A stretch of DNA of 64,000 nt from Selaginella moellendorffii (taxonomy: Eukaryota > Plantae > Lycopodiophyta), in the NCBI RefSeq assembly GCF_000143415.4, contig NW_003314332.1, positions 434,001 through 498,000 on the forward strand. The letters run 5' to 3'. The position numbers and the translations under genes are program-made. Position 1 is the stretch's first letter. The number at the start of each line of letters is the position of its first letter. Shown one piece after another: positions 2,591 through 54,978 of this stretch. The notes below the pieces were generated by a model, which was not told the origin of the DNA, searched no databases, and saw nothing but the letters and a program-made list of their open reading frames with translations.

Positions 2591-5500
2591 CACACCACCT
2601 CGGGGTCCAAAGACATATCAGGAGCAGTTGGAGCGACAAGCAATTGAGGCAGCCCCTTCGTCAAGCAAAGGCAAGGCACCAGCCTCATTGGTCAACACGA
2701 TTTTGGTAGCCGAGGAACTCCATAGGCAACAGCAGCAAACCACAGCCACTCGAGCCCAAGTGAAGAAGAAGGTAGCCGCTCAGCTTGCCACAGATCCCCC
2801 GGTGCCGGTTGAGAGTGAATCCCCGTCTGCATCAGACCTGGTGACACAGAGGGTGGCTTGTAAGCTCCCCTTCAAGTCACTACTCTCTTCTCCTCCTGAG
2901 ATCTCACCAACAACTATTCCTGTGCTGGAGCCGGTTCTTCAACAGCTGGTTGACACTCCTGTCACCTTTTCGCTCCGAGACATGTTGTGTCTTATCCCGG
3001 GATTCGGCCAGCGTTTAGAGGAGTTTGCACTATCAGGAACACCAGAGAGCACTCTCAAGAGGACTCCTCAAGGGGTGCACATGGTCGACATGACAAGATA
3101 TGGTGGAGATCCTGGTCCATTCTTCATCCCAGTGCAGATTGGTACTTCCTGTTGTAGGATGGATGCTTTAGTTGACTCTGGTTCCGGAAGCAACATTATC
3201 TCTCTCGAAGCTGCCCTTTCAGCACAGCTACAGATCACTGAGAGCTCCTCCATCGTGCTCAAGACCTTCGCCAACCACATTGTTCCTCCAGCGGGTATTT
3301 GCCGTGGTGTCAAGGTCTCAGTGCAAGGTGAGGTGGATTTCCTCGTGGTTGACTACCAACGTCTGGGAACGTCCTCTTTGAAGGAATCTATCATCCTTGG
3401 CCGCTCATGGCAAGTCACAGCCCATTGCACCATCGACAGTGCAAAAGGCAAGATGGAAATTAGCGATGGAACCAATAGTACCACCTTCTTCAACAACCAT
3501 GGCTGAGCTCTTTCTCAGCAAGCCCAATAGGCTCAGACTAAGATGGCCTCCACACCACACTTCCCTCCCGAGCTCACAGAGGTTTTTCCTGAGTTGGCGG
3601 TGGAGTCGACCATCTATATGATGGATGCTTTCTCATGCAATGCAATTGACATGGTTGGAGGTGAGTCAGATAGCCCAAGACATCTCTCAACTTCACTCTC
3701 TTTATTTGAGAGTAAGGCTGAGCCTCTAGACAGGCTCTCTTTATTTGATGGTGGGGCTTATAGAGTATGGGCTCTTATATCCAGCTTTTCGGAGTGTTTC
3801 TTGATAGAGGAAGGGCTCCTTGATTTGTTTCTTGCATGGGACCAACTCTCTCTTATGGAGCTTGACAACACAGTCACTCCAGACCAGGTCCATCTTTCGC
3901 AGGACACAGCCAAACTCAATCCTCCTCAGCAACTATCTGAGGTGTCACACAGCCAGCATCTTCCTACTAAAATCGTAGTAGCTGATGACTCCAAGTGTAT
4001 TTCGTCATGCCGTTTCTTGGAGATGGAGGATGACATCCAGACACACAACTGGCAAAAAGAATCAAGCCAGTCGGACGTGCTGCATGCGAGTTATAGCTCT
4101 TTGAGTTCAAAATTTCCTACCATGGAACCCCCGGTACAGGTCTAAGTGTATTACACTGAAACTTCAGCACCAGACTTGGACTGGACTTCAGTAGAGGATC
4201 TTCCTTCACTTGTAGAGTACTTGGCTACAGTTCTTGCTTGGACATCGAGCACTCAGAGCATCAGAGGCAAAGAGAACAACAGACAAAGACTCCGGATCCA
4301 ACAGCAGTGTTCTTGCCTGACTGGCCAGAGACAATCTTGCCGGATGTGGTGTCTCCAGCATCTTTATTTGAAGAAGAGAACACTCCTATGATTACAGCTT
4401 ATTTCGACGGTGCGTTCTGCCCCAAAAACTAGGTTGCCGGCATTGGAGTTTGGATGATTGATCCGTTGGAGAACAAAGTAGCCAACCTCTCTATCACTTT
4501 GCTAGCAACATCAGCTAATGAAGCAGAGTACTTGGCAGCTATCACCGCCATGAAGTTGGCCATAGATCTCAAGTTTAGGTGAGTCACTTTCATTGGAGAT
4601 GCACAACTCATCATACGCCAACTTACTGGAGAATACCAAGTCCGCAAAGAGAACCTGAAAGAGTTATGGCAGCAGGCGGTCAACCTGAAGGATGAGTTCT
4701 CTCATATGACTTTTCAAAGTGTCCCTCACGAGGAAAACTTTTGGGCAGACAGGTTATCACATCAAGCAATCACCATGATGCGAGAGGCAAAAGGCACTCC
4801 CTGCTCTTTGGTTTCCAAGGTCAGGGAGGAATCTGAGATAGATGAGCCCCATGAGCACAAGGTTTTTCCAGACTCTAGGGTTCATGCCATTTCCCTAGGT
4901 GATGACAAGGACCCAATCTTTATCACCACATCGCTTGCTCAACAAACGCAGCAAAGCTCTTGGATCTCCTTCATTGTTTCAAGGACATGTTTGCTTGGGA
5001 CTACAGCCAGCTTCTAGGAGTTCCCATGGACACAATCATGCATAGTATTGTGCTTTCAGAGATAGCCAAACCAGTCCGTCAAAAGATGTGGCATTTCAGC
5101 CCGGTAGCTCACTCAGAGATGAAGTTGGAGATCGAGTGACTTCTGGTAGCTGACTTTATTTATCCTTTGGAGAACTTAGAGTGGGTGGCCAATCTCGTTC
5201 CTGCACACAAGGCAAATGGAAAACTCCGCATCTGCATTGACTTTCAAGACCTAAACAAGGCAACTACGAAAGACCATTTTCCGACTCCATTTATCGATGC
5301 GATTGTGGATGAGATGGCTGGTCACCAGTACTACTCTTTCATGGATAGCTTTTCAGGGTATAACCAGATCTTCATTCATCTGGATCATAGAGATCTTATG
5401 GCCTTCCAGACACCTTAGGGCGTCTTGCTATTTGGTTTCAGGGTATAACCAGATCTTCATTCATCTGGATCATAGAGATCTTGAGGTCTTCCAGACACCA

Positions 5501-7124
5501 TACTATGCCTCACATTCATTCAAGGAGACTGAGAAGAAGTACGTGGATGCAGAAAAAGAAGTAGTGGCTGTTGTTTACACCTTGGAGCGATTTTGTCACT
5601 TTCTTGTTGGAGCCCGTATCCATTTCCATGTCTATTTTAATGTGCTGACCTTTCTTTTACAGCGACCGGTTCATAGTCCTTGTACTTTATCTTGGATTGT
5701 GACCATCCAAGAGTTCCAGCCAACTTTTCACATCTGGCGGAAGCGTGTGATGGATCCAAGTGAGTTCCTGGTTGCCGAAACTACTTCCTTTGTGGTCCCA
5801 GCAGCATTACAGGACATTGCGGTGTACCTGGATTCAGGTCAGTTCCCAGCAAATTCCTCACCAATACAACAAAAGGCATTGGAGATCTGAGCATAGGGGT
5901 TTTGCCTTCTCAACGGACTCCTTTACCATGGGACTTCTTAGGAAGTTTTGTTGCGGTTTGTGGGGGAACACGTCCCTGAGCTCCTTTGCGCTTTCCACTC
6001 TTGTGCGGGGCATTTCTCAGGACGGGTCACAGCACAGCTCCTCTTGTGCCATGGCTACTTTTGGCCTCGGATTCACCAGGACAGCCTGGCCTATGCAAAG
6101 GCATGTGAGAAGTGCCAATGGTTCAACCCCTGGAGCCATGTTCCACGTCTTGCTTTCCAGCTTATCACTTCTCTGGGTCCCTTTTACCACTGGGGACTTG
6201 ACTTTGTCAGCCCGATCAACCCACCGAGCTCAAAAGGGCAGCAATACATCATCGTGGCGACGGACTATTTCACAAAATGGGTTGAGGCCACCCCTCTGCG
6301 ACAAGCAGATCAATAGTCTACAGCAAAGTTTGTCTACGAGTATATCATTTGCCGATTCAAAGTTCCCGCTATTTTGATTTCCAATCGAGGCAACGGCTTC
6401 CTCGGACAGGTGATGCAGCATCTTCTCTAGCAGCTGCAGGTCAAGCACGTGAAGAGCAGTAGCTATTATCCTGAGTGCAATGGCCAGGCGGAGTCCAACA
6501 ACAAGATATTGAAGACAGTCATCTCAAAGCTTGTGGAGGATCACTCGAGGCATTGGCACAAGCACTTGGTTACAGCATTGTGGGCCTTTTGGACGTCCTT
6601 CAAGACATCCATTTCCGCAACCCCATTCTCCCTTGTCTATGGGACAGAGGCCGTGCTTCCAGTGGAGATCCAAGTGCCATCGCTCTCACTTTCACTTCAA
6701 TATGCAACAGCGATGCAGCTTAGCGATGAGGACAAGCTTCATGCACGTGACTTGGAGGTTCTTGCCTTGGAAGACGATCCATGATTGAACATCTCCTTCG
6801 AGGCAAGCAGAAGATCAAGTCAGTCATTGATCACCAGCGGTCTGCCAAACCATTCAAGGACGGCAATTTTGTTCTACTCAAGGAGTTCACGCCACCTTCG
6901 AAGTTCTGCCCTCGCTGGACTGGCCCCTACTTTGTCCAGTGACACATTGGAGGTGGAGCATATGTGCTAGTTGATGGTAATGGACGTGAGCTCCCACACG
7001 CTCATAACCACTCTCATCTCAAACGCTTCATCCAGTGAGGCGTTCCTCTTCTCTTCTTTTTCTTTTTCTTTTTCTTCCTTTCTTTCACTTTACTTTCATG
7101 GCTACTTTTCTTACTTTCAGGGGG

Positions 7125-14350: not shown

Positions 14351-15962
14351 ATAGCTTCTTAATCACATGATAATATGTTATATGTTTGGCTAAAATAGAA
14401 GAGTCATAGTAAGTGTGGAAAAAGTGTAAAATGAAGATTAAAGACACCATCAGCCATAAATGTTCATCTAAATCAATTTCAACAAAATAAAAAAAAGTCA
14501 TCTTGAAGGCAATTTTTACAATATAAATGCCAACATAACAAAATATCAGCAAATGATTAAGGATTCTCAAATCCAATACTAAAGACTAGTTTAACCTTTG
14601 AGCCTCACCTATAGCAAGTAAATCTAATAATACATATTGTGGATATTAAATATTAAGCACAAAAACTACCAATAGCATAGAATCCATATTAAAAAAATCC
14701 ACTAACACTAAAAAAAAGTTTTGAAACAAAAGAAGAGAAAGAAGGGAGAGGAGATTAAGAAAGAGTATAAGTATCAACTATTAAACTCCCAGGACAATAA
14801 AAAATTTAGAAGTTGTAGACTTTATAACCCATTAAACAATATAGCCAACCAAGTTCTTTCATTTGAACAATAAACATGATCACTCTCAAGCAATATTCAA
14901 AAAACATGCAAGTATGGATGAAACCCTAGACAACTTTTCTCAATCATGGAATAATTCACCTCAGCTAGCTACAAAGTACAATTGATATATACAATAAGAT
15001 GATATTGACCAAACATACTTATACTCTCTTGCATCAATACACTCATGAGACTAATGTCAAAAACATCTACACACAATAAGAAAAAAACAAGTTTAATTAG
15101 GATACAACACTAAAAGAGTTGTTAACATATTTTTGAGATTTACAAATAACCACTTATAATCTTCAGATTAGATGAAAAATGATGTTGATGACTTTAGCAA
15201 AGCTTGTAATAGTGTAGTACAATAAGAAATATTGAATAAGAAATTGAGAATAATATTTTAATTGCTAAATTTTTTATAGAATCTAAAAATAGTTAGTCTT
15301 ATTATAAACTTTTCATAAAAGAAAACTCATTATACTTTTTTAAAAAAGGTATAAAAGCCTAAATTATAAAAAGTAGTATTATTTTTTATTTTTACTTTTA
15401 GAAATTCTTCTAAAAAGCTTTAACCAAAAGGGAAAAGTAACTGAATATAAATCATAAAACTTGAAATTGAAGGATGATTTGCCTAATCAATATGTATCAT
15501 GTAATTATAACTATAGTGATGTTACTTCTATTTCAAATTGCCCATGTTAAATCACCCCCTCCTCACCCATACCGAATTCAGCCTCTTACAATCTTTCGTA
15601 GAAATCTCCACACATTATCATTGTCACGATTTCAAAGTAGTATGGTAGAACTTGTTAGACATATTTTTAGTGAATACAATGACAACAATCCAATTTCAAT
15701 AGGAGGGTCAGTTTTAGATATAAGGTTTGGTGACAACACTAGGCTAAGTTTCTATTTGTATGTGAATGCCCCTTTAGTTGTAAATAATCAGTTTCTAATA
15801 TGTGTTTCTGATCCCTTAATCCCCATGAACTTTCATCCGACATATGTACGGAATTCACTCATGCGAATTGCTGCACGGATTTTTATTGATGCTGCTAGCA
15901 ATGCAACTCGATTGAATTTTTGTGGACGCATACGCATTGAGTTTTTGAACTTTGCAATCAGC

Positions 15963-17125
15963 TGTAAGCCACAAATTTTTCCTTTTCAACTTGCCAGCTT
16001 ACCTCGCCTATCCGACCAACTCTGCCTTGGCTTGTGCTAAGTTCCCTCTCCAAGGTTCTCGCTTATGGTGCCAGCTCCTACTTGGTTTCAGCTACTTACT
16101 GCATGAGCAACGGAGTGTTAGCCATCCATCTACGGATTCCCAAATCTCTCCCAATCCCCCTCCCCGGGTTAGACTGGACTTAAGGTTCGGCTACACTCCC
16201 CGCAGGCACAAGCAGCCAAGCACACCAAGCCTCCAGATTCCTAACACCCCAAGGTACCACAAGGCTTGATCATGGGACCCTCTAAATCCCAAGCCTTGGG
16301 TGCAGCACTTGCTTCGGGACGTCGGGGCGAAACACCGTGGCCTAACGGCCCGGTATGGGTACCTCTACCCCCCCCACTTCCATCCCGAAGGGAAGGCCCA
16401 AGCCCCCGGAAGGGCGCGGACCAATGAGCCACAAGGTACTCAAGTGGGGCACCACTCCACCTGAGCCGGGAGCACCGCAGTCGGTTTCCCTTTCGGGAGT
16501 GGGAGCTGCTCTTGAGCACTTCCTTGGATGGCCCCTCCGGCACCAGCCAAGTCCATGCTCACTCCCACCCAAGGCCCTTCGGTCCCAGTCCCAACCTCAA
16601 GTCGGTTTGGAAGCCCAACTGGAGAGTCCCTTCTAAACTGGTTCCTGGACCTCACTATCCCTACTATACTTTTGGAACCCCCTGCAGCCCCCCCCCCCTG
16701 GGAGACGCACGCTTTGGGCTTTCACCCCTTGACCCGTATTAGTATTTGGACTTAGTCTCTGGCTCGATCTCGGACCCAATTTCGGATCCGACTTCGGATT
16801 CGGGTTCGGACTCGATCACGGACTCGATCTCGGACCCGACCTCGGACCCGACCTCGGACCCGACCTCGGACTCGACCTCGGACTCGGTCTTGGACCCGAT
16901 TTCGGATCTCGGACTCCGTCTCGAACTCGGTCTCGAACTCGGACTCGAACTCGGTCCCCGAGTCGGTCTCGGACTCGATTCCGGACTCTATCTCGAACTC
17001 GGTCCTAGAGTCGGTCTTGGACTCGATCCTCGACTTGGTCCCATCCGATGAACTCTTTGTCATTTCGGTCAAGCTTTTTTGGGGATCCTTTAGCCTACGA
17101 CATCTCGGGGAGTCGGTTCCTTACA
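15963..17125 (-). repeat. 3' LTR (1163 bp)
   Basis: TGTAAG...CTTACA; direct repeat of 22359-23507; adjacent G-rich PPT-like GGGTGGTGGAGT on minus. Confidence 0.98.
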
Positions 17126-17910: not shown

Positions 17911-17962
17911 CTGCTTAAGGAACTCAAGATCAATTCATTTACAGGAATACATGCATTTTTAC
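17911..17962 (-). other. Spliceosomal-type intron (52 nt) in the integrase GPY/F region
   Basis: CAAAG|GTAAAA...TAAGCAG|GTTC; splicing gives RKLTQRFAGPYE. Confidence 0.85.
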
Positions 17963-18380
17963 CTTTGGGTCAACTTTCGGCTGATCCCACTTGGTAGCCT
18001 GAGGTTCTTGGTGTTCAGCCACACCTTCTCCCCAGCTTGGAACTCTACATCTCGGCGTTTTAGGTTCGCGTACTTGGTTTGCCTTTGTTGAGCCCGTTCC
18101 AAGGAATCCCTCACTAGATTCCAAATGTTGAGTCTTTCCGCCGTGAATGCCTCCACTGCGGGTAACTCTCCATGATACTCGGCCACGCCGAGTTCCACAG
18201 GACCTTCAATAGCTCGCCCATTGATGACTTCCCATGGACTCACCCCGATACTCGAATGTGGTGAGTTGTTATAACACATTTCCGCAAGTCCCAAATGACT
18301 TACCCAATCGGTTTGGTCTCCCGAGACATAGCATCGCAAATAATCCTCCAGCTGCCTATTCACCCTTTCCGTTTGTCCGT

Positions 18381-18426
18381 CTGTCAAGAAGTGTTAGTGC
18401 CAACAACTTGACTCAATACCCCATAC
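18381..18426 (-). other. Spliceosomal-type intron (46 nt) in the integrase catalytic core
   Basis: ACAG|GTATGG...CACTAAC...TTGACAG|ACGG; splicing gives AYHPQTDGQTERVN. Confidence 0.88.
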
Positions 18427-21400
18427 CTGTTTGTGGGTGATAGGCTGTGCTGAATTTCAACTTGGTGCGATACTGTTCCAGGAGAGTCCTCCAGAACCTA
18501 CTGGTGAAGATCTTATCTCGATCTGAGATGATCTCTTCCGGTCTTCCCCGCACTCGAACCACTTGTTCGAAGAACAGCTTTGCCACACCTTCCGCATCCA
18601 CCTCTGTTGTGGTGGGTATGAAGTGTGCCATTTTCGAAAATCGGTCCACCACCACGAATATCGCATCAAACCCCTCACTTGGGGGGAGTCCCGTGATGAA
18701 GTCCATCGTAAGACATTTCCACGGGCGATCTGGAATTGGGATGCTTTGCAACAAGCCCCCACTAGCCTTGGTCACGGCTTTTACCTGCTAACATGTTGGA
18801 CATGTCTTTACATAGTCTTGGACGTCCTTAGCCATATCTGGCCAATGGTACTTCCTTTTGAGTAAGCCCATCGTCTTGGGCACTCCACCGTGTCCCGCAA
18901 GAGGTCCGTCATGACACTCTTCTAAGGCCACCTTCCTTAGTTCCCCTTCTGGAACATACACCCTCGTTTGCTTGTAATAAATGAGTCCGTTGCGTTCTGC
19001 ATAGCCCGTTTTCTCTTCCGTTGGCAGCTCACCTCTCTGGTGAGCTTCCCGCGCCTCTAGATTCCTCAGCAACACTTCCTGTGCTAGACCATCATTCTCA
19101 TATGCTGTCCGCACATCGTCCCAGAAGGTTGCTGTTCGCTGGATATTGCCAACTTCAAGCTCGCTTTTCGACTTAGCACATCCGCCACGATGTTGCTCTT
19201 CCCAGGCTTGTACAGAATTTCGCAATCAAACTCGGCCAAGGCATTGGCCCACCGACCTTGTTTCCCTCTTAGGTCGGGCTGTGACAAGAAGTGTTTCGTT
19301 GCCACATTGTCCGTGTAAACCTTGAAGTGTCTCCCAAGGTAGTGTCGCCACTCCTTGAGTGCCTTGACCACCGCAAACAATTCCTTCTCATGGGCAGGCC
19401 ACTTCCGTTGAGCCTTGTCCAGCTTCTTCGAGAAGAACGCTACCGGATGGTTGTCTTGCTTCAAAACTGCGCCCAACGCAAAGTCCGAAGCATCCGTTTC
19501 TACCTCAAAGTCCTTACCAAAGTCTGGTAATGCCAATACGGGAGCCTTCCTCAACTTCCCTTTGAGGTGGACGAATGCCGCCTCGCATTCCGCTGTCCAC
19601 ACCATCTTCCCTTTTCCTGTTTGGTCCGTTAAGGGCAGGGCTACTCTCGAATAGTGTCTGATAAACTTTCGATAGTAGTTGCATAGCCCCAGGAATGCCC
19701 TCAACTCATGTACATTGGCTGGTCGCTCCCATTCCTAGATCGCTTGGACCTTCTCCAGGTCCACCTTGAGCCCATCCTGGCCCACCACATGCCCGAGAAA
19801 CTTTACCTCTTGTTGAGCAAAGTCACATTTGCTCTCCTTAGCATACAGCTTGTGTTCCCTTAGTTTCTCAAACACCTTCACCAAGTGTTCGGCATGCTCC
19901 TCTAGCGTTTCGCTATAGATCAGGATGTCGTCGATATAGACGACCACGAAGTGATCCAGATAGGGTACAAAGATGTGGTTCATTAGCGCCGAAAACGTTG
20001 CCGGCGCATTACATAGCCCGAAGGGCATCACCAAAAACTCAAAGCTCCCATACCTTGTTCGACAGGTTGTCTTCTTGACATCTTCCTCGACTACCCTGAT
20101 CTGGTAGTATCCTGACCTTAGGTCAATCCTCGAGAAGTATTTTGCCTTTCCCAACCTATCGAACAGGTCCTCAATCCTTGGCAAAGGGTACTTGTTCTTC
20201 TTTGTATACTTGTTGAGCAACCGGTAGTCTATGCACATGCGCATAGATCCATCTTTCTTTTTCACAAATAACACCGGCGCCCCCTACGGCGACTTGCTCA
20301 ACCTAACATACCCTTTGTCCACCAACTCCTCTAGTTGGCACTTGAGCTCCTTGAGTTCTTTTTCGTTCAAACGATAAGGGGGACGAACCACTGCCTCAGC
20401 ACCCTCGACCAGCTCAATCTTATATTCTATCGGTCGTGCTGGGGGTAGCCCCGCCGGTAGCTCTTCCGGCATGGTATCCTGGAATTGGTCCAACACCCGC
20501 TGGATCACTAAAGGTACTTCTTCCATTCCTGTCTTTTTGTCACTCTTCACCGAGAGTAAGCACAAAAAGGCCGCCTTAGTTCCTTTAGTGAGTTGTCCTC
20601 TCGTGGACACCAGGTTTAAGCAAGAATCTTTGGCCTTGCTTTGCCCTACCTTTAGATCTTGGGCCTCCACCCTAGATCTTCTTCCTTGGGCATTCGCCAG
20701 TACCACAAGGTTTCTACCTTGACCATGCAGGGCTACCACGAATCGATTGAACCAGTCCATTCCGAAGATCACGTCAAATCCCACCATGTCCAACATGGTG
20801 AAATCCATGTCCACCTTCCAAGTCCCCACTTCGACTCTCGCTTGTCGAAGTACTTCATCGGTGCTTTGGCTACCTTGAACAAACTCTATAGTCCTTGGTT
20901 CGCCTAGCCGCTGCACCGTTAGTCCGGCTTGCCGGACTATGTCTGCAGCCACAAAATTATCTAAAGCACCCGTGTCAATAAGGATCTTAACAAAGCTACC
21001 TCCGAGCTTCCCTCGGAGGGCTAGAAGATGTCGCGAACGACTCTCTACCAAAGTTGCTCGTGTAATGAGTAACTTTGAGTTAGGGACTGGATCACATACC
21101 TCATTTTGGACTTCACCCGACTTGATGGCCATATTGGCTCTGGCCTTCTTCGGGTAGGGACATTCCCTCGAGAAGTGTCCCGCTTCACCACAGTTGTAGC
21201 ATACGTTGTTTCCCACGCTGCTATATGACTTGACCTTCTTATCCGTGGGTTTGTCTCCTTTTGCTTGACTCCCCCACGTACTCGCTCGTTGGCCCCCGGA
21301 TTTGCCTTTCCGGAACCCCGAGGACTCATTCTTAGAGAAACTCCTCTTGAATTTCCCTCTGCTAAATGTTCCCCTTGGTTTGGCCCCTTTGCTGAACGTG

Positions 21401-22343
21401 GATCCCGACCCCGTCGTGTTCCCCTTTCGCAAGTTATCGTTGAAATGCACCTTGATGGCTGCATCCAACGCTTCCTTGTAGTTGGTCGGGTTCCACCGCA
21501 TTACTTCGCCGTGAGCCCAGGTTTGCAAACCTGATATGAAGGCATGGAACGCATCCATATCCCCCATGTCCGTGACAAGTATCCTCTTTGCCATAAACCC
21601 ATTCACATACTCCTGAATGGTTCCGGTCTGCTTCAGCCTACTCAGCTCGTCCCTTAGGTGCAGAGTAGCATTCGGAGGAACGTAAGTTGTGCGGATCCTC
21701 GCCTTCATCATTTCCCAAGTGGCCACCGGTCCTTCGTTGGCCTCCGTTGTTCTCCACCAAGACTTGGCATTATCTGCCAAGTATGGTTTTGCACATGGGA
21801 CCTTTTCCGAGCTCGGTAATCGCAACGCTCGGAAGTAGTCCTCCATATCGTAAAACCAATCCTCCACCACCTTATAGTCGTTCACTCCCTTGAAGACCGG
21901 TGGGGGCTTTGGTTTGTACTTGGGAACTGCCTGAGGGACTGATTCCACTTCGGTCTGTTCGACCTTGTCTGGTTTTGCCTCAGTCCCTGCCGAAGGGTCC
22001 GCACCTTCTGCGCTGCCAGCATCCGCAGTCTTTTGCTTTTTCTTCCGCTTCTCGTCACGCTTTAGCTTGCGTACGAGAGTCTCTAGCAAGGCATTGGTCT
22101 ATGCCAATTGTCCTTCTAGAACATCCAATCGAGCCTTGGACGACCGAACCTCACCACCGGACTCCTGTTTGGAAGTTGCCTCACTGGAGTCCTCCTCATG
22201 CAAGGATTCCTCATCCATCGCCTCCTGTTCGACTGGAGGCTCCAGCTCTGGAGGAGGTTCCGTCTCTGCCTGGGTTCGCTTACGTCCTGCCCTTGCCATC
22301 TCCCAGCAATCCGCCTCTATCCTTCGCTAGAACTGAGGAAGAG

Positions 22344-22355
22344 GCTCCGATACCA
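22344..22355 (-). promoter_or_regulatory. Primer binding site (initiator Met tRNA type)
   Basis: TGGTATCGGAGC on minus, 3 nt from the 5' LTR. Confidence 0.92.
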
Positions 22356-22358
22356 AAT

Positions 22359-23507
22359 TGTAAGCCACAAATTTTTCCTTTTCAACTTGCCAGCTTACCT
22401 CGCCTATCCGACCAACTCTGCCTTGGCTTGTGCTAAGTTCCCTCGCCAAGGTTCTCGCCTATGGTGCCAGCTCCTACTTGGTTTCAGCTACTTACTACAT
22501 GAGCAACGGAGTGTTAGCCATCCATCTACGGATTCCCAAATCTCTCCCAATCCCCCTCCCCGGGTTAGACTGGACTTAAGGTTCGGCTACACTCCCCGCA
22601 GGCACAAGCAGCCAAGCACACCAAGCCTCCAGATTCCTAACACCCCAAGGTACCACAAGGCTTGATCATGGGACCCTCTAAATCCCAAGCCTTGGGTGCA
22701 GCACTTGCTTCGGGACGTCGGGGCGAAACACCGTGGCCTAACGGCCCGGTATGGGTACCTCTACCCCCCCACTTCCATCCCGAAGGGAAGGCCCAAGCCC
22801 CCGGAAGGGCGAGGACCAATGAGCCACAAGGTACTCAAGTGGGGCACCACTCCACCTGAGCCGGGAGCACCGCAGTCGGTTTCCCTTTCGGGAGTGGGAG
22901 CTGCTCTTGAGCACTTCCTTGGATGGCCCCTCCGGCACCAGCCAAGTCCATGCTCACTCCCACCTAAGGCCCTTCGGTCCCAGTCCCAACCTCAAGTCGG
23001 TTTGGAAGCCCAACTGGAGAGTCCCTTCTAAACTGGTTCCTGGACCTCACTATCCCTACTATACTTTTGGAACCCCCTGCAGCCCCCCCCCCTGGGAGAC
23101 GCACGCTTTGGGCTTTCACCCCTTGACCCGTATTAGTATTTGGACTTAGTCTCTGGCTCGATCTCGGACCCAATTTCGGATCCGACTTCGGATTCGGGTT
23201 CGGACTCGATCACGGACTCGATCTCGGACCCGATCTCGGACCCGACCTCGGACTCGACCTCGGACTCGGTCTTGGACCCGATTTCGGATCTCGGACTCCG
23301 TCTCAAACTCGGTCTCGAACTCGGACTCGAACTCGGTCCCCGAGTCGGTCTCGGACTCGATTCCGGACTCTATCTCGAACTCGGTCCTAGAGTCGGTCTT
23401 GGACTCGATCCTCGACTTGGTCCCATCCGATGAACTCTTTGTCATTTCGGTCAAGCTTTTTTGGGGATCCTTTAGCCTACGACATCTCGGGGAGTCGGTT
23501 CCTTACA
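22359..23507 (-). repeat. 5' LTR (1149 bp)
   Basis: Direct repeat of 15963-17125; about 7 substitutions, two C-run indels and one 12-bp unit difference counted by eye. Confidence 0.98.
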
Positions 23508-24896
23508 TCAGCTATGAGGTTGTTGACTACAATCGTCAACCAAAGAATTCATTAGTGATTGGTAAGACCTTATATGGAAGGAATTCATCAGTGATAGATA
23601 GTAATTTATTTGTAAAGAATTCATTATTTGTTCCACATGAAAGTGATAGTGATCAAGGGAGCTGCTGGAATTTTGAAAACTCTCTTATAGGGAGCCAGGA
23701 GAAGATACCTGGATCTTATCTTCTACAAGGGAACAGTATCAGTTCTTTAAATGGGCTCTATAGGTTAATTCTGCGCATGGACTGTAGGTTAGCTCTAAGG
23801 AAAAAGAGTAAGCACCAGGAAATTTGGGTGAGCAAACATGATTATCATACTTCTGATGGATGCTATGCTATACAACAGCAAGATGGAAACTTGGTTATCA
23901 AGGACAATTCTGGGAATGTTTTTTGGGCGGCTGGCGTGTATTGTCAGCCCCAGCCAAATTGCATTGTTCTCACTAGTGTTGTTGTGAGAGGAGAGGGAAA
24001 TGCTTTCATCTATAATTTAGAGACTCGAGAAATCTGGTGGCAGGCACTAAGCTGAAATATTTGGTTTAATGCGCACTGTTAATCATTATAAATTTTTTTA
24101 ATTTGCAGAAAAAGATGGTGAAAAGGAACTATGCCGATGACATTGAAACTTTTAGACAAGAAAATTGAGAGGAAGAAACTCTTACTAGAGATGTTACAGA
24201 AGAGGCTAAGGCTAATTAAGAAGAGGAAGAGCCCAATGCTATAACAATATAGCATATGGCTAAAGCCATTGAGATTGAGAATATATAAAGAGAAGTTTAT
24301 AACTTGAAAAAGGAGAACAAAAAGAGGAAGAAAGAAGATGAGGTAGATAAACCAATTAAACCTAGGTAACTATACGTACGTAACCAAAGAGAACAACTTG
24401 AGAATTGATCTATAGGATTTAAATATAAAAGGAAAGGGCCTATAAAGAAGAGTGCACCTCTTTTTTTAATCAATTAAGAGTTTTAGGATATTTAGGGTTA
24501 TACATCCTTGGGTTTGAGTGGTATTGAGTTGGGTGACCTCTCAAGAAGTCCAAATTTAGAAGCTTACATTTAGTATTGGAACAATCTTAGGTTTGGCTCT
24601 GTTAGTTGGCTAGGGGAATTATATAATATATTGAGATTGATATTTAGTAGGTCTAATTTGCCTTTGGCTAAGCTCAACATGAAAGGGATGGTGTCAAGAG
24701 AGTGAGGCTTTCAAGAGAGTTGTGGCTCTTCACTTCCATTCACGAGGGCATGAACTTGCAAAGAAGTATAGTAGATTATAAGCAACTAAAAAGAATAACT
24801 TAAAAGACAATCCATAAAGTTCAAATATAAAGGGAAAAAACCCATGAAAAATAATACACCTCCTTTCTAATTAGTTAAAAGTCTTAGGATACTTAA

Positions 24897-34384: not shown

Positions 34385-37012
34385 GTTCCCCTTATGGAAT
34401 ATACACTCTCGCCTATTTATAATAGATGAGTCTATTGCAGTCTATATAACTTATTTTCAATTCTATAGGTAACTTGCCTTTTTGGTGAGTTTCTTGTGCT
34501 TCTTAGTTCCTTTAGCAACACTTCTTGTGCTAAACTATCATTCTCATATGTTGTCTGCACATCATCCCAAAAATTTGTTGTCATGCTATATATTGCCAAC
34601 TTCAAGCTAGTTTTTCAACTTAGAGTATCTGCCACAATATTGCTCTTCCCAAGTTTATATAGAATCTTGCAATCGAACTCGGCCCAAAGCATTATCCCAC
34701 CGACTTTGTTTTCTTCGTAGGTCGAGTTGTGACAAGAAGTGTTTCATTGCCATATTATCCATGTAAACTATAAAGTGTCTCCCAAGGTAATGTTGCCACT
34801 CCTTGAGCACCTTGATCACTACAAACAATTTCTTCTTGTGGGTAGGCCACTTTTACTGAGCTTTGTCGAACTTCTTCGAAAAGAATGCCACTGAATGATT
34901 GTCTTGCTTCAAAACTGCACCTAACACAAAGTTCGAAACATCTATTTCTACCTCATATTCCTTACCAAAGTTTGGTAATGCTAACATAGGAGTCTTCTTC
35001 AACTTTCCTTTGAGGTGAACAAATGCCACCTCACATTCCGTTATCTATACCATCTTCCCTTTTCCCATTTAGTTCATTAAAGGCAAGGCTACTCTTAAAT
35101 AATGTTTGATAAACTTTTGATAATAGTTACATAGCCCCAAGAATGCCCTTAACTCATATATATTCGATAGTCGTTCTTATTCTTGAATCACTTGGACTTT
35201 CTTAGGGTCCACCTTAAGCTCGTCCTTGCCCACCACATGCCCGGGAAACTTTACCTCTTATTGAACAAAGTCACATTTGCTCTCTTTAGTATACAACTTG
35301 TGTTCCCTTACTTTCTCAAACACCTTCATCAAGTGTTTGGCATGCTCCTCTAGTGTTTCACTATAGATCAAGATGTCGTCAATATAAAAGACCACAAAGT
35401 GATCCAGATAAGGTACAAAAATGTGGTTCATCAATGCTAAACTGTTGCTAACGCATTGCACAGCCCAAAGGGCATCACCAAAAACTTAAAGCTTCCATAC
35501 TTTTTTTAACAAATTGTCTTCTCGACATCTTCCTCTGCTACCCTAATCTAGTAATATTCTGACCTTAGGTTAATCCTTGAGAAGTAACCTCTCGAATAGG
35601 TCCTCAATCCTTGGTAAAGGGTACTTGTTCTTCTTTGTATACTTATTAAGCAATTAGTAGTCTATACATATACGCATAAATCCATCTTTCTTTTTCACAA
35701 ATAGCACTAATGCCCTTTACAGTGACTTGCTCAACCTAACATACCCTTTATCCACCAACTCTTCAAGTTAGTGTTTGAGCTCCTCAAGTTCCTTTTCATT
35801 CAACTTATAAGGGGGATGAACCACCACCTTAGCACCCTTGACTAGTTCAATCTTATGTTCTATCAGTCATGTAGGGGGTAACCCCACTAGTAGCTCCTTT
35901 GGCATAGTATTTTGAAATTGGTTTAACACCTATTAAATCACTAAAAATATTTATTTTGTTCCTATCTTTTTGTCACTCCCCACTAAAAGTAAGCACAAAA
36001 ATGCTGCCTTGATTTCTTTAGTGAGTTGTCCTCTCATGAACACTAGGTTCTAATAGAAGTCTCTAGCCTTACATTGCCTTACCTTTAAATCTTAGGCCTC
36101 CACCCTGGATCTTTCTCTACGGGCATTCGACAGTCCCTTTAAGTTCCTACTTTGTCCATACAAGGTTACCATAAACTGATTAAACCAATCCATCCCAAAC
36201 ATTACATCAAGTCCAATACGGTGAAATCCATGTCTACTTTCTATGTCCCTACTTTGACTCTTCCTTATCGAAGTACCTCATTAATGTTTTAGGTACTTTG
36301 AACAAACTCTTTAGTCCTTGGTTCACCTAGCTATTGCACCATTAGTCTGGCTTGCCAAACTATATCTACAACCATAAAATTATCTGAAGCACCCATGTCA
36401 ATAAAGATCTTAATAAAGCTACCTCCAAGTTTACCTCAGAAGGTTAATAAATGTCACAAATAACTCTCTACCAAAGTTATTCATGTAATGAGTAACTTTG
36501 AGCTAAGAACTACATCACGTACCTTAGTTTGGATTTCACCTAACTTAATAGCCATATTGACTTTGGCCTTCTTCAAGTAGAGACATTCTCTCGAAAAATA
36601 TCCTACTTCACCGCAATTGAAGAATATGTTGTTCCCTATACTTAGTAGATTTCGCCTTTTTATCAGTGAGTTTGTCCCTTTTCACTTGACTCCCCTACAT
36701 ACTTGCTCGCTAGCCACCAAATCTACCTTTCCAAAACCTTGAGGATTCATTCTTAAAGAAACTCTTCCTGAATTTCCCTTTGCCATATGTCCCCCTTGGT
36801 TTGGCTCCTTTGCTAAATGTGGACCCTAACCTCGTTGTGTTCCCCTTTCGCAAGTTATCATTGAAATGCATTTTAATAGTTGCATCCAATGCTTCCTTAT
36901 AGTTGGTTTGGTTACAATGCATCACCTCACCTCAAGTCCATATCTATAAGCTTGATATGAAGGCATGGAATACATCTATATCACCCATATTCGTGACAAA
37001 GATCCTCTTTGT
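34385..37012 (-). mobile_element. Old, heavily mutated copy of the chromovirus gag-PR-RT-RH region
   Basis: Colinear with ~18940-21590; residual ORFs (YIDD at 35258-35461, gag at 36710-36925); mostly C>T/G>A changes. Confidence 0.93.
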
Positions 37013-37479
37013 TAAAAATGCATTCTTTGGGCTTGTGAACTTGTCATCACTTGCATCTTGAGTAGAAATATATCCCTCACTATCATTTTCTTCAACATAA
37101 TGTTTCCCCTCATCCATTGGCACAACATTAAAAGCAGTCTTAGGTTTTTTATTAGAGGGATTGCTGAGCCTTGAGAGAAGGAGGCATCATATAGAATCCT
37201 CATATCCATTGTTGTGCCTCAAAGTAGTAGTAGAATCCTTTTTAGTTTGCTATGCCAAAAGGAAACCCAAACATTATAACAGGATTAAAGCAAATAGAAA
37301 ATTGTCATAAATCTGCTTACCAAAGTGAGCACAAGCTTTTAATCCCTATAAACTCCAGTTCTTCAACTGTAATATACAGCATATATTGGATAGTTTTGCC
37401 CTATGCTTGGAAACCCTTTTTACAAATTTCAAAATTTAAAACAGTTATGATTGAAAAGTGTTGAAAGTGAGTAAAGTTT

Positions 37480-41512: not shown

Positions 41513-43899
41513 ATGAGGGCGATCTTCTGGGGCATTCTATGCCGGCGCTCTTGTGCTTGTAGCTCGGAGGAAGTAAGCAGAAGAGTCTCCAAGGAAGACC
41601 ATACACTCGTGAGCTTTTCTTCTTTTCTTTGCTTTCTTGTAAGAAAGATGATGTTTCTATACTCGAGCAGGCTATCTGGAGCTCACCGAGACGGTGGTGG
41701 CCGAGGCCAAGCTTTCGCGATGAAGAGGTTGGAAGTCTTTGTTATAATTCTTGCGAGATAACAGAAGATTTTCGGCTTAAACCAGGCACGGGCATTCTCC
41801 TCTCCGGATTGAAGGCATGCAGCAGCCTGAGAGACCTCGAGCTTGGCCACAGACTTCGCAGAAATGCTCTCGAAAACAAGCACATCTACGTCGCCAACTC
41901 GCTCGCAAACATGTATGCCAAGTGTGGCAACATGCCGGAAGCTTTCTCGGTGTTCCACGCAATGCCTCGTCGCAACCAGGCATCGTGGAACACCTTGATA
42001 GTTGGATACGCAGAGAATGGAGAGAGCGGCACAGCGCTGGAGGTTTTCTCTCGCATGGAAGAGCCGCAAAGGAACGCTCTCACTTTTGTGGCGGCGTCCA
42101 TGGCTTGTGCGAGCTTGGCAGCGCAGGAGGAGGGCCGGCTCGTGGATGGAAGCTTGGTGAAGTTGGATTGCCTGGAGAGAGGCATGGAGGTCCACTCTTG
42201 CGCGTCCAAGGCTGGGTGTGACTCGGAGCTCTTGGTGGCGAGCAGCCTGGTTGATATGTACGCGAAGTGTGGGAGCATGGCGAACGCTCGCAACGTTTTC
42301 AGCTCGATGCTTCACAGGGACGTGGTTTGCTGGACGAGTTTGATCCAGGGATACGCAGAGAATGGACAGGGCGAGGAGGCTCTGGATTTGTTTTCAGCCA
42401 TGTCTGGCGAGTGCGAGCCAAATGCCCGGACTTTCGTGGCCGTGCTGCTCGCCTGCGCGAGCTTGGCTTCTCGAGAAGTTGGCCGGATGATCGCAGATCA
42501 TGGGAAAGCTAGTGTGAAAGTCAGGGGCTTGGAGATTGCAATGGCTACACACTCGAGAGCTGCGAAGATGATCAATTGTCTGGAGCTGGACGTTTTCGTG
42601 GCGAGCAGCTTGGTAGATGCCTACGCAAAGTGTGGGAGCTTGGTGGACGCTCGCATGGCGTTTGATAGAATGCGGCACAGGGACGTGGTTCTTTGGACTT
42701 CTCTGCTGCTCGGCTATGTTGACAATGAAGAGTGCGAGCTGGCTCTCGAGCTATTCGAGTTTATGGTTGCCGAAGGTTGTGAACCGGGTGCTCAGAGTTT
42801 TGTTGCTGGATTGGTGGCATGCGCGAGATTGGCAGTCGAGGAAGAAGAAGAGACCACGCAAAGTATAGAAGGAAGGCGAGTGAAACTGACAAGCCTCGAC
42901 AAAGGAATGGCGATCCATTCTCGAGCTCACACAAACTTGGGCTGTTGCGACTCCAACGTTTTCCTGGGAAACACGCTGGTGGACATGTACTCCAAGTGTG
43001 GCAGCCTCCTCGACGCTCGGATCGTCTTCGACCGGATGTTCCACCGCAGCATCGCGTCCTGGAACGCACTGATAGCAGGGTATGCTGAGAACCGAGAAGC
43101 CGAGCTCGCGCTGGAGCTCTTCTCGCGGCTCGAGTGCGCTCCAAACGCGGTAACTTACGCTGCCGCGCTGCTGGCCTGCACGGAGCTGGCGACTCTAGAG
43201 TCCGGGAAGGCAATCCACGCTGCTATCATCCGCTGCGCGCTCGAGAGCGATGAATTGGTGGCGAACAAGCTGGTGGATCTCTACGGCAGGTGTGGCTGCA
43301 TGGTGGACGCGGAGATCATCGTTTCTACGCTTGGAGAGCCGACGGTAGTGGCTTGGAACGCACTGATAGCAGGATATAGTCGCCAGGCCGAGGCTTCGAG
43401 CCGGGCTTTTAGCGCGTTCCAGAGGATGCGAGAGGAAGAATCAGTGGCTCCAAACGAGGTAACGTTTCTTTTGGTTCTCACAGCTTGCAGCCATGCCGGT
43501 TTAGTCGACATGGGCCAGGCTTGCTTCGATGCCATGGTTTCTACGTACAAACTCACGCCTGGTATCGAGCACTATCACTGCTTGGCTGATATCTTTGGCC
43601 GTGCGAACCAGCTCGAGAGAGCTGTGGAGATTGTGACGAGCATGCCTTACAAGGCCACCTCGGTCAGCTGGAAAACAATCCTGGCCTCGTGTCGAAAGTG
43701 GCGGAATGTAGAAGCTGGGAAGTTTGCGTTTGATTCGCTACTTGCGCTTGAGGTTGATGGTCACAAGACTGCGGCATTTTTGCTCATGGCGAGTTTGTAT
43801 GGGAGCCTTGATATGTGGAAGGAACAAGCCAAAGTGCTCGAGGCCAGGAATATGCTCTTCGTAGATTCAGAGAGAGAAAAATTTGGAAACAAAGAATGA
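41513..43899 (+). CDS. PLS-class pentatricopeptide repeat protein ending in E-type motifs, no DYW
   Basis: Repeated LVDMYAKCGS...A..VF..M..RDVV.W motifs; TF..VLTACSHAGLV, PGIEHY.C..D..GRA; 5' exon structure uncertain. Confidence 0.93.
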
Positions 43900-48672: not shown

Positions 48673-51136
48673 ATGGACCCAGCCACCCAGATCGCTCTTG
48701 CAGCGACTCTGGGCAACTTACTCCAGGGCTGGGATAATGGAGCTATCGCAGGTACTCGAGAAATCATTCTTTGCTTTCCCATGCCACCTTACTCATCCAG
48801 TGTGATCTTTCTTTCCAGGAGCATTACTCTATCTCAAGCCCGAGCTGGGAATACAAGGGAATCCCATCATTGAAGGCATTGTGGTCGGATCCACGCTCGT
48901 CGGGGCTCTCCTTAGCACGATCTTCTCCGGGCCTGGATCAGACTGGCTGGGCCGGCGAGCTATTCTCATTGTCTCGGGGGTTTTCTACACGACGAGCTCT
49001 GCTATCATGCTGTGGTCGCCGACTGTGCTGGTGCTGATCTTGTCGAGGTTGCTGGTCGGTTCGGGTCTCGGCATCGCAGTGACAGTGATCCCGATATACA
49101 TTGCTGAGACTGCTCCTCCTGAGATCCGTGGGACTCTGTCCACGCTGCCGCAATTCATGGGATCGGTGGGCCTGTTCTTAGCCTATTCGCTCTGCTTCTT
49201 CTTCTCGCTCTGGCCAACTCCAAACTGGCGGATCATGCTGGCGCTCCTTATGGCACCATCGCTGCTGTTCTTGGCACTGGCGATCCTCTACTTGCCAGAG
49301 TCTCCTCGGTGGCTGGTGAGCAAAGGAAAGATGCTGGAAGCTAGGCTTGTGCTCCAGAGGCTGAGGAACAAGACGGACATATCAGGTGAATCCTCTTGGT
49401 TTTCGTTCTTTGTTTATACTCACAACTTCTTTTCATCTTTCCAGCGGAGTTGGCACTGTTGGTGGAAGGATTGGGTGTAGGAAGCGGCGGTTCACTGGAA
49501 GAATGGGTGCTAGAACCGGCTCCACCGAAGACCAAGAGCAATGGTTCGTCGTTTCTCGCGAATGGATCCAGCCAGCACGTTTTGTATACACCGGAAGATG
49601 GTGGAGTCTCGTGGATCGCCAAACCTCTGCTCGAATCCGATCCGACACACAGCAGCTTCTCGCAAGCCGGTGGCCAGTCTCCTTTCGTGGACCCCCTGGT
49701 AGCACTCATTGGGAACCTCACCAATGTGAGTGTGGCTCGCGAGCAAGAAAACTACGAGTCCGACGTAGAGAAAGGCGAGGGGGATTTAGAAGAAGGTGGC
49801 GAAGAAGCGGTGGTGGGAGAGATCGAGGAGCTCTTAACTCCGTTGCTGCGACGACGTGCGAGCTCAAAGTCTGTGATCACGGCAGGATTCTTGTCCAGGC
49901 CGAGCTCCATGCTGGGCGTAACTCACAGCAGCAGCGGCGTGAATGGGACTACGGTTGCGAGCCCGGTCGTGAGCGCTGGCATCGGTAGCGGCTGGCAGCT
50001 TGCTTGGGAATGGGATAACCAGGAAAGAGGAGGACCATTGTCAGCGACCAAGAACACCAACATGGACTTTCGACGTGTTTTTCTTCTCCAAGAGGGTGCT
50101 GCTGCTGCTGCCAACATCTCTGGGAGTCTTTCTGTATCAGCGCGTTCTCTGCCGGGCATGGTCGAAGATGGTGGTGGAAACGCCGTCGTCGATCAGTCAA
50201 TCCAAGCCGCGGCTTTGATCGGCAGGCCGGCTCAGTCATTCCACAACCTCGTCTCGGACAAGGTGGTCGGCCCGGCGATGGTTCATCCTGTCGAGACAGC
50301 CATCAAAGGCCCGGCGTGGTCGGATCTGCTAGAAGTTGGCGTCCGCCGCGCGCTCGTCGTGGGTGTTCTTCTACAAATCCTCCAACAGGTACGTGGAAAG
50401 AAAAAGTTTGCCATACTATTGCGATCATGGATTGTGTATTTGTTTCGCAGTTCAGTGGGATCAATGCGGTGCTCTACTTCGTTCCCCAGATCCTCCAGCA
50501 GTCCGGGGCCGATGAGCTTCTAGCACGTCTGGGACTCGGCTCGGCGTCAGCCTCGATTCTCGCCAGTGGCGTCACCTGCTTGATCATGCTGCCGTGCATC
50601 GGCCTCGCGATGCGTCTCATGGACGTGAAAGGAAGAAGGTAAGCCAACTTTTCATAGTTTCCTTCGAACTCTGTTTCTCGATCACGCACAGGCAAATACT
50701 CCTCGTCACGCTTCCAATCCTCTTCCTCTCGCTGGTCACCATGGTCATCTCCAGCACTCTCGTCCCGGCTGGGATCCTCCAGGCAGCAGCGTCCTTCGTC
50801 GGCGTCACAGTCTACGTTTGCGTTTTCGTGATGGGATTCGGACCCATCCCAAACATCCTGGGCTCGGAGATCTTCCCGACTCGAGTTCGCGGCCTCTGCA
50901 TTGGGATGTGCCAGGCCTCGATGTGGACTTGCAACATCATCCTCACCAACATGTTCCCGACGCTCCTCGGGGTGCTGGGAATCGGGGGCTTGTTTGGCTG
51001 CTTCGCGGTGGTGGTGTTGGCGGCCTGGATCTTCACCCTGTTCAAAGTTCCCGAGACCAAAGGCATGCCGCTGGAGGTGATCTCCGAGTTCTTCGCGATG
51101 GATGCCGCCAGCCAAGATCACTCTTTGAAACTTTGA
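48673..51136 (+). CDS. TMT: Tonoplast monosaccharide transporter (TMT/TST, MSSP family); exons 48673-48751, 48819-49385, 49445-50388, 50451-50638, 50692-51136
   Basis: GNLLQGWDNGAIAGA, DWLGRR, PESPRWLVSKG, long central loop with GIGSGWQLAW, QQFSGINAVLY, PETKGMPLEVI; GT-AG introns of 53-67 nt. Confidence 0.96.
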
Positions 51137-52473: not shown

Positions 52474-52538
52474 ATTCCCGCCCACTGGCTGCTTATAGCT
52501 TTACACGCGTGTAAATTTGAAATGGCGATGGCGGGAAA
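52474..52538. promoter_or_regulatory. E2F-type sites at the start of the OB-fold gene
   Basis: ATTCCCGCC 52474-52482; GGCGGGAAA 52530-52538; TTTGAA 52516-52521. Confidence 0.5.
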
Positions 52539-54978
52539 TGGTATTCTAGGGTTTATAGAATGGGCGAGGAGGGAGCTCGAGGAGTACCGGCGGCGGCACG
52601 ACGATGGCGCGGCGGCGCCCGGATGGGCGTGGATGATGGCGTGCGTCTTGTCGTGCTGCCAAGCTCATCCCCGCGGGGTCACGGAAGGGATCCTTCTCGC
52701 GGAGCTCTTCCAGGTGAGGATTTCTCGCTCGGTTCGAGGGATTTTTGAGGAATGTAGGTGCTGTTTGTGGATGATAGACCTGGGGCGAGAGGGAGCGCGG
52801 CAGAGGCAGAGGGAGGCTCGCGGAGAATCACCCGGTGATGCAAATGAAGAGGAGGAGGGGGGCTCGGTATCAGCATTTGGCCAATGCTGTGACTGTCGAC
52901 TCGATTCTGGAGAAGAAGTTTGTTTCTCTGGATGCCGTGATGGAGGTCGTTGTTCTGGACATCCACGTCTTGCCTGGTAAGCTCATTTAGCTTGGATTCT
53001 CGATTGATTGGAAAGTTTCCAGGGAGCAATGGCTATCTTCTTACGCTTGGAGATCTTTCCAGCGGGAACACAGTCGACCACTATCTGCACCGAAAGTAAG
53101 CCAAGAACTTCTGGTATTCGTCTTTACCTTCTTTTGTTGATGGCTTCTTTTGTTCATAGATTTTTTGACATGGTACAAGATGAGGAGGGAACTATTAAGA
53201 GAGGTCGAGATCTACGCATGACAGGTTGTAGGCTGAGAGTTGGAGCTGGATCGTGTGCTCCGCGTCTTTTACCCACAGAGCACCTAGTAGTCCTACTTGA
53301 CGAGGTGCAGTGAATGTTCGAATTTTTGTGAGTTAGCTATTGTTTTCTTCGCAGGACCAAGAACACGATGCAATGCTGCTCGGTGCCCAGTTTCTCTCTG
53401 ACACTTTCTCGTCTATACAACGTGGAGCTGCCGGAGATCACCATATTTATGCCAAGTAAGTGTTGTTTCGCGTGATCGATCGAGTATGGCTTAATCACTT
53501 TGTGACGATAGACTGGAAAAGTCCATGGAGACTGAGACGAACGGCGACAGAAGATGGAAAACAATCTTACTTGTTGATAGTGAGGGAATCACAGTGCCGT
53601 TCGTCCTGTGGAATGACCAGGTTTCTATCGCCAATTTGCTAAGGTTTCGTATCAGGCTTTCTGCTTTCGTAGTGAACATGTTTTACGTGATTGCAGTGAC
53701 GGAAGCATGTTGGCCCTTGAACGACCCTTTGTAAACTATGACACAATGGAGATAGGCCTGGAGTCTGGAACATGCACTCGGATCTATTGTGTGCCGCCCT
53801 GTCTTCAACTCGAGCAAGAGGTAAAACTGCGTTTACTTCGGAATAATTTTCTAATCGTTGTCAAAGGTGACAGTGGCGTCTGATCACGAAACATGTCTTG
53901 GATCGGAAGTGCTGATTCCAAGCAACCCACACGGTGCTGTTGATCTCAACGATTTCCCGGCTCGTGTATGTACAATGCAAATTTTGTCATTCCTACTGAC
54001 TGACGTGTGTAACTTACACGCAGCTTCTGGTAAAGGACTTGAGACCAAAGATGTTCAACCTTGCAGTTTATGGTACAGTAGCGTTTGTTGGTCGTCAGAT
54101 TTCATCTGCTAAGTGTAGGCAACCATTTATACTGTCTATTAACGACGACACCGGCATTATCGAGATTGAGCTTCAGTTCATGCTGGAGAGCTGGTAAAAA
54201 TGTTTAATTGTTTTTCTTTTAGTTTTGATTTTTTCTGAGAGTGACTTTGGCTGGCAGGTGTTTTGGCCAGGTTTATTCCGGACAACTTGTGTTTATATCG
54301 GGCCTTGCTACTTATGCAGACACTGGTGGAAGGTAAAAGAGAAACTATCTGTTCTCCTTAACGATATTTCGTTGCAGGATGAAATGTTCTTGGACCGAGA
54401 GCACGGAAGGAGCATCTTTCGTGAACGTTTCCCATCTCACTGCAGTCATCTCTTCCCCGTGTCTTCACAGCATTGTTCCTGTCTCTCGATGGTCTGGCTA
54501 TGGCCAGGTAGGAGAAATTCCTTTTAAGCTCTCTATTTGACCCGAGAAGATGATATCAGGTGTGCAGAGTAAGGGTCGAAAGAGTGGAGCTCCAGCTTCA
54601 TAAAATACACGGTGCTTGTGGTCGGCGTGTTACGGATGAAAGTGGCACTTGGTTTTGTTCTTTCTGTACACGCAGTTGCGATCAAGCGTCGCTCTCTTTC
54701 CACGCAGACGTCTATCTTTTTGACGTTGGAGAACCAGGCAGGGAAATTTGTGCTAGAGTCGATGGTGAGGCTGCGTTCAATCTTCTTCAAGTTTCTCCTG
54801 AGACCTTTCGTACTTGGCCCGAGGTATTTTCTGTTTCTGGACTACAAACTATCACTTTTGAGCTTATTATTCACAGGATGAGCAAGTGATGTACTTACTA
54901 AGTTTCGATGGTGAAGAATTCTTAGTGTCTTTTTTTCAGAGTCAAGGTAAACTCTGTATTGGTTGTGCCGTTAAATAG
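52522..54978 (+). CDS. Multi-exon OB-fold nucleic-acid-binding protein (CDC24_OB-type) with RPA1-C-like Zn ribbon
   Basis: PGWAW....LSCC.A...GVT.GILL.EL; KRGRDLRMTGC.LR, RLLPTE.LV.LLDE; C-terminal HGACG...WFCSFC, LLQVSPETF..WPEDEQ; many short GT-AG introns. Confidence 0.8.

Follow-up and report, generated by a model that had tools for sequence, protein, structure and literature searches.

A 46-nt segment that interrupts a Ty3/gypsy integrase gene of Selaginella moellendorffii close to the codon of its catalytic Glu is probably a real U2-type mini-intron. Judging from the sequence of the 64-kb stretch of DNA analysed here (the window), it is probably one of two introns that the SM1-Galahad family carries fixed in its integrase gene, with the spliced RNA serving as the message for complete integrase.

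A Candidate Mini-Intron next to the Integrase Catalytic Glu

The segment has the following position and signals:

18426-18381, minus strand: intron 1, 46 nt, GTATGG donor, CACTAAC branch motif, GACAG acceptor, phase 1

In the minus-strand orientation, the site reads TATCACCCACAAACAG, then the segment itself, GTATGG...GGCACTAACACTTCTTGACAG, and then ACGGACAAACGGAAAGG. Within the stretch from 18560 down to 18250, the integrase frame upstream of the segment is KLKFSTAYHPQT, followed by the intron start GTATGGGGTATTGAG and, at its far side, the intron end GGCACTAACACTTCTTGACAG. The downstream sequence ACGGACAAACGGAAAGG encodes (D)GQTER, and the segment splits the Asp codon of DGQTE. The adenosine of the CTAAC motif lies 13 nt ahead of the acceptor, so that a YTRAY motif is present within the range of 10-40 nt before the acceptor. 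A 46-nt intron with GT..AG ends and a CTAAC branch motif had been claimed in the initial annotation, and we found it at exactly the coordinates given there.

When the segment is retained, the integrase frame terminates as ...AYHPQTGMGY, with a stop codon within the segment. The ORF downstream reads (L)TDGQTERVN... and differs in frame from the upstream ORF, since 46 mod 3 = 1. Excision yields AYHPQT joined to DGQTERVN, by which both the frame and the conserved motif are restored. Exon 1 aligns with residues 1156-1267 of the Ty3 Gag-Pol and exon 2 begins at residue 1268 (PDB 7q5b), which indicates that the two halves abut with no residue missing or added. The distance between the second catalytic Asp (ISDRD) and the Glu (DGQTE) amounts to 35 residues only once the segment has been removed, and the segment is located four codons before the DD35E Glu. 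The location beside the catalytic Glu and the restoration of HPQTDGQTER, both proposed in the initial annotation, are thus borne out by the Ty3 alignment and the Asp-Glu spacing. An ACAG repeat allows five equivalent placements of the borders, one of which gives GT..AG; we estimate that a random insert would have such a border with a chance of about 2%. A second segment in the same integrase gene shares the GT..AG border property.

The Element Carrying the Segment

The segment lies in a complete chromovirus of 7545 bp with a single gag-pol organisation, all parts of which are on the minus strand:

23508-23512 (upstream copy) and 15958-15962 (downstream copy), minus strand: target site duplication GCTGA (5 bp)
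22359-23507, minus strand: 5' LTR, 1149 nt, TGTAAG...CTTACA ends, 12-nt tandem repeat block, G10 run
22343-22355, minus strand: primer binding site TGGTATCGGAGCC, 13 nt, initiator tRNA-Met type, 3 nt past the 5' LTR
18427-22299, minus strand: exon 1 (the published ORF1), with Gag (Retrotrans_gag, zf-CCHC), protease, RT, RNase H, integrase zinc finger and integrase core to HPQT
17963-18380, minus strand: exon 2, with DGQTER (catalytic Glu), the remaining integrase core and the first part of the SH3-like domain; 139 open codons
17529-17910, minus strand: exon 3, with the rest of the Tf2-1-type SH3 domain, followed by the chromodomain and the stop codon
17126-17137, minus strand: polypurine tract GGGTGGTGGAGT, abutting the 3' LTR
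15963-17125, minus strand: 3' LTR, 1163 nt, with 6 mismatches and 4 gaps relative to the 5' LTR over about 1149 nt

Pfam profiles were matched in the order Gag, zf-CCHC, protease, RT, RNase H, integrase zinc finger and rve core, followed by SH3_Tf2-1 and the chromodomain. The rve profile match stops exactly where exon 1 stops (profile position 102/102). In the downstream exons, SH3_Tf2-1 was matched with an E value of 2.6e-15, Chromo with 6.4e-16 and integrases of the protein library with 5e-39.

The gaps in the LTR-LTR alignment arise because the block of 12-nt tandem repeats, found inside both LTRs (16744-17091 and 23126-23473), differs in length between them. The near-identical LTRs and the target site duplication indicate that this copy is a young product of reverse transcription. 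Since the reverse-transcribed copy still holds both segments, the template RNA must have been unspliced at both sites.

A T-rich, in-frame GT..AG segment of 57 nt was also seen at 20943-20999 (minus strand), spanning the protease active-site motif LIDTGA; its excision would delete the catalytic Asp of the protease.

A Second Candidate Intron and Comparison with Host Introns

The second segment lies further downstream in the integrase gene:

17962-17911, minus strand: intron 2, 52 nt, GTAAAA donor, AAGCAG acceptor, phase 2

Its context is ...SRKLTQ AG, then GTAAAAATGC...TTGATCTTGAGTTCCTTAAGCAG, then GTTCGCG, with a branch-like motif, TTGAT, at -19. When it is retained, the AG/GTAA donor creates a TAA stop at once, and when it is excised, SRKLTQR is joined to FAGPYEI, giving the product SRKLTQRFAGPYEI, which is colinear with KLDYKRAGPY of fungal relatives. 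Intron 2 interrupts the SH3-like domain of the integrase, upstream of the chromodomain, and its excision reunites both halves of the domain.

The two segments were compared with the introns of a host gene in the same window. The other features annotated in the window are as follows:

48673-51136, plus strand: sugar-transporter gene (Sugar_tr, tonoplast monosaccharide transporter-like) with four introns
41629-43899, plus strand: PPR protein gene, intron-less
52522-52980, plus strand: exon with a CDC24_OB1 domain
59353-60285, plus strand: ORF with a weak B_lectin match

The four introns of the sugar-transporter gene, placed by protein colinearity, are 67, 59, 62 and 53 nt long, have GT..AG ends, and contain 36-43% GC and 34-49% T. 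Intron 1 has 43% GC and 33% T and intron 2 has 33% GC and 35% T, as compared with 50-51% GC and 20-21% T in the exons of the element. Intron 2, with its 52 nt and 33% GC, thus falls in the class of the host introns, and intron 1 is host-like in composition, but its 46 nt are 7 nt under the shortest of only four host introns, which speaks to some degree against the intron reading. A strict YTRAY motif is absent from these four introns, so that the branch motifs of introns 1 and 2 are supportive and not required. Intron lengths in S. moellendorffii are known to be short, to cluster with those of fungi and to differ sharply from those of other land plants (PMC6157073).

Correspondence to the SM1-Galahad Family

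SM1-Galahad is a Ty3/gypsy chromovirus family of S. moellendorffii (Novikov et al. 2012, PMC3350952), described as about 7.5 kb long, with LTRs of 1076/1146 bp that have TG..CA ends and G runs, and with a 13-bp tRNA-Met primer site. The corresponding values in the window element are 7545 bp, LTRs of 1149/1163 nt, a 13-nt site of the tRNA-Met type, and runs of G10 and G11. The published ORF1 comprises 3885 bp (1295 aa) and ends after the core integrase, without a chromodomain (PMC3350952); in the window copy, ORF1 starts with the ATG at 22299 and is closed by the stop at 18413, inside intron 1; its length is 3887 nt, where 1295 codons and a stop would take one nt more. ORF2 and ORF3, the latter with a group I chromodomain, were reported as 316 bp and 309 bp (PMC3350952), and their counterparts here are 318 bp, counted from the first Met, and 309 bp. 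We found that the window element matches SM1-Galahad by its dimensions and layout, the comparison being made with the published description, and that the published breaks between ORF1, ORF2 and ORF3 are the two intron segments.

The published account reports hundreds of SM1-Galahad copies about 95% alike, none of them intact, leaves the three-ORF layout unexplained and does not contain the word "intron" (PMC3350952); an interpretation of the ORF breaks as a pair of spliceosomal introns is new compared with that account. The closely related sister family SM2-Galahad is described with a single ORF and numbers hundreds of copies (PMC3350952), which indicates that the SM1 lineage has gained the introns. 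The family identity, like the second intron at 17962-17911, had been overlooked in the initial annotation.

The window copy is damaged. It carries four in-frame TAG codons (22101-22099, 20286-20284, 19737-19735 and 18790-18788, minus strand) and a 1-nt frameshift near 19136 (minus strand), at which a sister contig differs by 1 nt in length. This damage exceeds what the six LTR mismatches predict, suggesting that an already defective template was mobilised in trans. The stops and the frameshift, together with the possibility of mobilisation in trans, weaken the need of the element for an integrase of its own and to that extent speak against the intron reading. They would suit an alternative in which the two segments are dead, intron-like inserts and SM1-Galahad is a non-autonomous family with a truncated integrase, to which integrase is supplied in trans, for example from the single-ORF SM2-Galahad. 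Consistent with this alternative, no intact SM1-Galahad copy was reported, and SM2-Galahad combines its one ORF with hundreds of copies (PMC3350952). Against it, GT..AG ends and a branch motif would have to coincide in both segments with a host-like length, T-richness and an excision that restores conserved motifs to the exact codon, at an estimated chance of about 2% each, and the open frames and strong domain matches kept by exons 2 and 3 would be left unexplained. We consider this alternative unlikely.

Uninterrupted Relatives

We examined whether relatives of the element are interrupted at the same sites. A metagenome scan matched only fungal gypsy elements, which were used as intron-free controls; all 29 fungal loci are continuous through HPQT/DGQTER and, allowing for their own decay, through KLDYKRxGPY. 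As protein controls, we used the best 150 relatives among 1.8 billion representative proteins, and DGQTE could be located in 126 of these. HPQT-like residues directly precede DGQTE in 105 of the 126, the others showing substitutions or N-terminal truncations, and no sign of an interruption at HPQT/DGQTER was seen in the 126 proteins with a located DGQTE among these best 150. Two library proteins that start at DGQTE, P0133 and P0141, were considered as intron cases and rejected: one lies at a contig edge, and the other has an uninterrupted HPQMDGQTE with Met in place of Thr. Ordinary gypsy/chromovirus integrases, including that of Ty3 (PDB 7q5b), have the same order of zinc finger, DD35E core, SH3-like domain and chromodomain; those checked are uninterrupted at HPQT/DGQTER, unlike SM1-Galahad.

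Homologous-protein searches with exon 2 or with the 604-aa gag-PR-RT ORF as the query returned no match. The closest relatives in the representative protein library show only 30-51% identity, indicating that the SM1-Galahad family is absent from those collections.

The window itself holds a second gypsy integrase (6197-6969, plus strand), which is continuous at both intron sites. The surrounding element (2628-6969, plus strand) is a distant gypsy element, about 29-31% alike in protease, RNase H and integrase. Another, related gypsy sequence at 34597-37024 (minus strand) comprises gag-PR-RT-RNase H, with 51-83% amino acid identity over the matched segments, and has neither an integrase nor an LTR pair. 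It is possibly SM2-Galahad-like and, lacking an integrase, offers no comparison at the intron sites.

Sister Copies and RNA Reads

In the DNA run X1, 73,802 pieces matched the element, a number that points to a very high copy number of the family. Intron 1 is retained in one piece that crosses it, and no skip at intron 1 or intron 2 was found among the best-supported joints of this run. In run X15, a contig of 614 nt, about 95% alike, spans 17958-18565 and keeps intron 1, the sole length difference over 609 nt being one extra base within intron 1. Absence from sister copies, together with a lack of splicing in vivo, had been named in the initial annotation as a ground for rejecting the intron; the segment instead occurs in sister copies as well as in the published reconstruction, for which many of the hundreds of family copies were used, so that it belongs to the family as a whole and has been carried through reverse transcription. 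The same data bear on the explanation that the segment is an insertion specific to this copy, or an assembly error in one element. The damage elsewhere in the copy, with its four stops and one frameshift, would fit such an origin. However, intron 1 also occurs in the X15 sister contig and in the X1 DNA piece, and the ORF lengths of the published family reconstruction need both breaks, so that we give this explanation almost no credence.

Whether run X15 derives from RNA or from DNA is uncertain. The element is covered by its contigs at an even depth of about 5 and the LTR at about 13, with an LTR/internal ratio of about 2.5, which looks DNA-like; the retention of intron 1 in this run thus proves little about splicing. 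The alignment of the X15 contig ends at 17958, having covered 5 nt of intron 2, and leaves 5 further letters unaligned. At this point the assembly graph may fork into spliced and unspliced forms, or the copies may simply vary.

The runs X22 and X23 are raw RNA-seq, of which about 12% each was sampled. Only about five reads of the two runs fell on the integrase, with no joint at the listing threshold. That no spliced read or contig appeared among these reads and the X15 contigs is in line with the view of the segments as dead inserts. X22 and X23 cover only one stretch, 22534-22890 in the LTR, at a depth of 10-16, by reads that are 90-95% alike and have unrelated loose ends on both sides. This seems to be a diverged LTR fragment embedded in another transcript elsewhere in the genome.

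Border Repeats and Intron Origin

ACAG closes both exon 1 and intron 1, and the borders of intron 2 likewise carry a 4-nt repeat, AGGT. The ACAG duplication had been taken in the initial annotation as what an insertion-derived intron gain would leave. The splice consensus is (C/A)AG before GT at the donor and YAG at the acceptor, and CAG is common to the exon end and the intron end in three of the four host introns. Consensus and host introns thus already account for CAG, and only the extra A of ACAG is left to explain; the duplication does not support a gain by insertion. We regard the two 4-nt border repeats as mildly suggestive of a gain by insertion or by repair of a staggered break, a hint and not evidence.

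A mobile, introner-like insertion or staggered-break repair that left ACAG as its target duplication would account for direct repeats at both segments, and the introns, being absent from SM2-Galahad and from every other relative examined, are gains. The sharing of CAG by the host introns argues in the other direction, as does the search for further copies of the 46-mer that the initial annotation had proposed: this sequence occurs once in the 64-kb window, and neither segment has another copy there beyond chance 8-12-mers. Introners are recognised by many near-identical copies in unrelated genes, and no second copy was found in the window. Such an origin appears improbable to us.

The border repeats also place matched codons at both sites, ACA...ACA at the first and AGG-TAA...AGG at the second, which could serve as take-off and landing codons for ribosomes that hop over the segments, as in the translational bypassing of phage T4 gene 60. 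At site 2, a stop directly follows the take-off codon, and the protein product would be identical to that of splicing. However, border repeats of this kind arise from the AG/GT splice consensus anyway, and bypassing gives no role to the GT..AG ends or to the T-richness of the segments; we know of no case of it in plant cytoplasmic translation. The matched codons are almost certainly a by-product of the splice consensus, and we regard bypassing as very improbable.

Proposed RNA Processing and Relation to Known Systems

We prefer the reading of the two segments as spliceosomal introns. Unspliced RNA can encode only Gag-PR-RT-RNase H and an integrase truncated four codons ahead of its catalytic Glu. 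Given these ORF breaks, complete integrase would come only from spliced RNA, and new intron-bearing copies only from unspliced RNA. The host spliceosome would excise both introns, of 46 and 52 nt, from a fraction of the transcripts, and the full DDE integrase, complete with SH3-like domain and chromodomain, would be encoded by these spliced messages alone. The unspliced RNA would be the genome that is packaged and copied, and would serve as well as the message for Gag-PR-RT-RNase H and the Glu-less integrase stub. The efficiency of splicing may thus set the amount of complete integrase.

A further step, which we put forward only tentatively and rather doubt, is that the two mini-introns are kept by selection as a switch of RNA fate, by which RNA with the introns retained becomes the genome and RNA with the introns removed becomes the integrase message. 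Retained introns would then mark an RNA for packaging and reverse transcription. The very short 46-nt intron would make removal inefficient, and the spliced form would be the sole message for active integrase with the chromodomain. Host splicing would in this way replace frameshifting as the control of integrase dose, and intron-less revertants would be selected against.

Elements that are copied through RNA should lose their introns, Ogre being the standard plant exception, and LTR retrotransposons that keep ORF-breaking introns are accordingly very rare. The intron of Ogre is single, longer and located ahead of RT, whereas SM1-Galahad, a Galadriel-related chromovirus of a lycophyte host, has two mini-introns (46 and 52 nt) within the integrase. 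Plant LTR retrotransposons are generally free of introns, with Ogre and EVADE as the exceptions (2025 review, PMC12786077). Among known systems, the Ogre elements of legumes come closest; they are likewise plant Ty3/gypsy elements with an intron-interrupted pol (Steinbauerova et al. 2008, cited in PMC12786077), in which spliced RNA restores the frame and genomic copies keep the intron (PMC12786077); by analogy, SM1-Galahad may be alike in mechanism. Ogre belongs to the Tat lineage, lacks a chromodomain and has an extra 5' ORF, whereas SM1-Galahad is a chromovirus with a chromodomain and a single gag-pol, and is therefore not a member of Ogre.

The splicing of EVADE, copia and BARE-type elements and of retroviruses is alike in that unspliced RNA is the genome and spliced RNA the message for a subset of the proteins (PMC12786077, PMC3735527). 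In these systems, splicing removes coding sequence to give a subgenomic gag/env message, and the full polyprotein is made from unspliced RNA (PMC12786077, PMC3735527). In SM1-Galahad, by contrast, the full polyprotein would need splicing. Our literature search found no paper describing a two-intron SM1-Galahad integrase.

A family with hundreds of copies in a model lycophyte thus keeps two introns, one of them beside the catalytic Glu of its integrase. The intron reading would explain why "intact" SM1-Galahad copies are absent and why the chromodomain lies cut off in an ORF of its own. SM1-Galahad could in that case serve as a simple system for two questions: what lets the unspliced genomic RNA avoid the spliceosome, and what prevents spliced RNA from being copied into the genome again.
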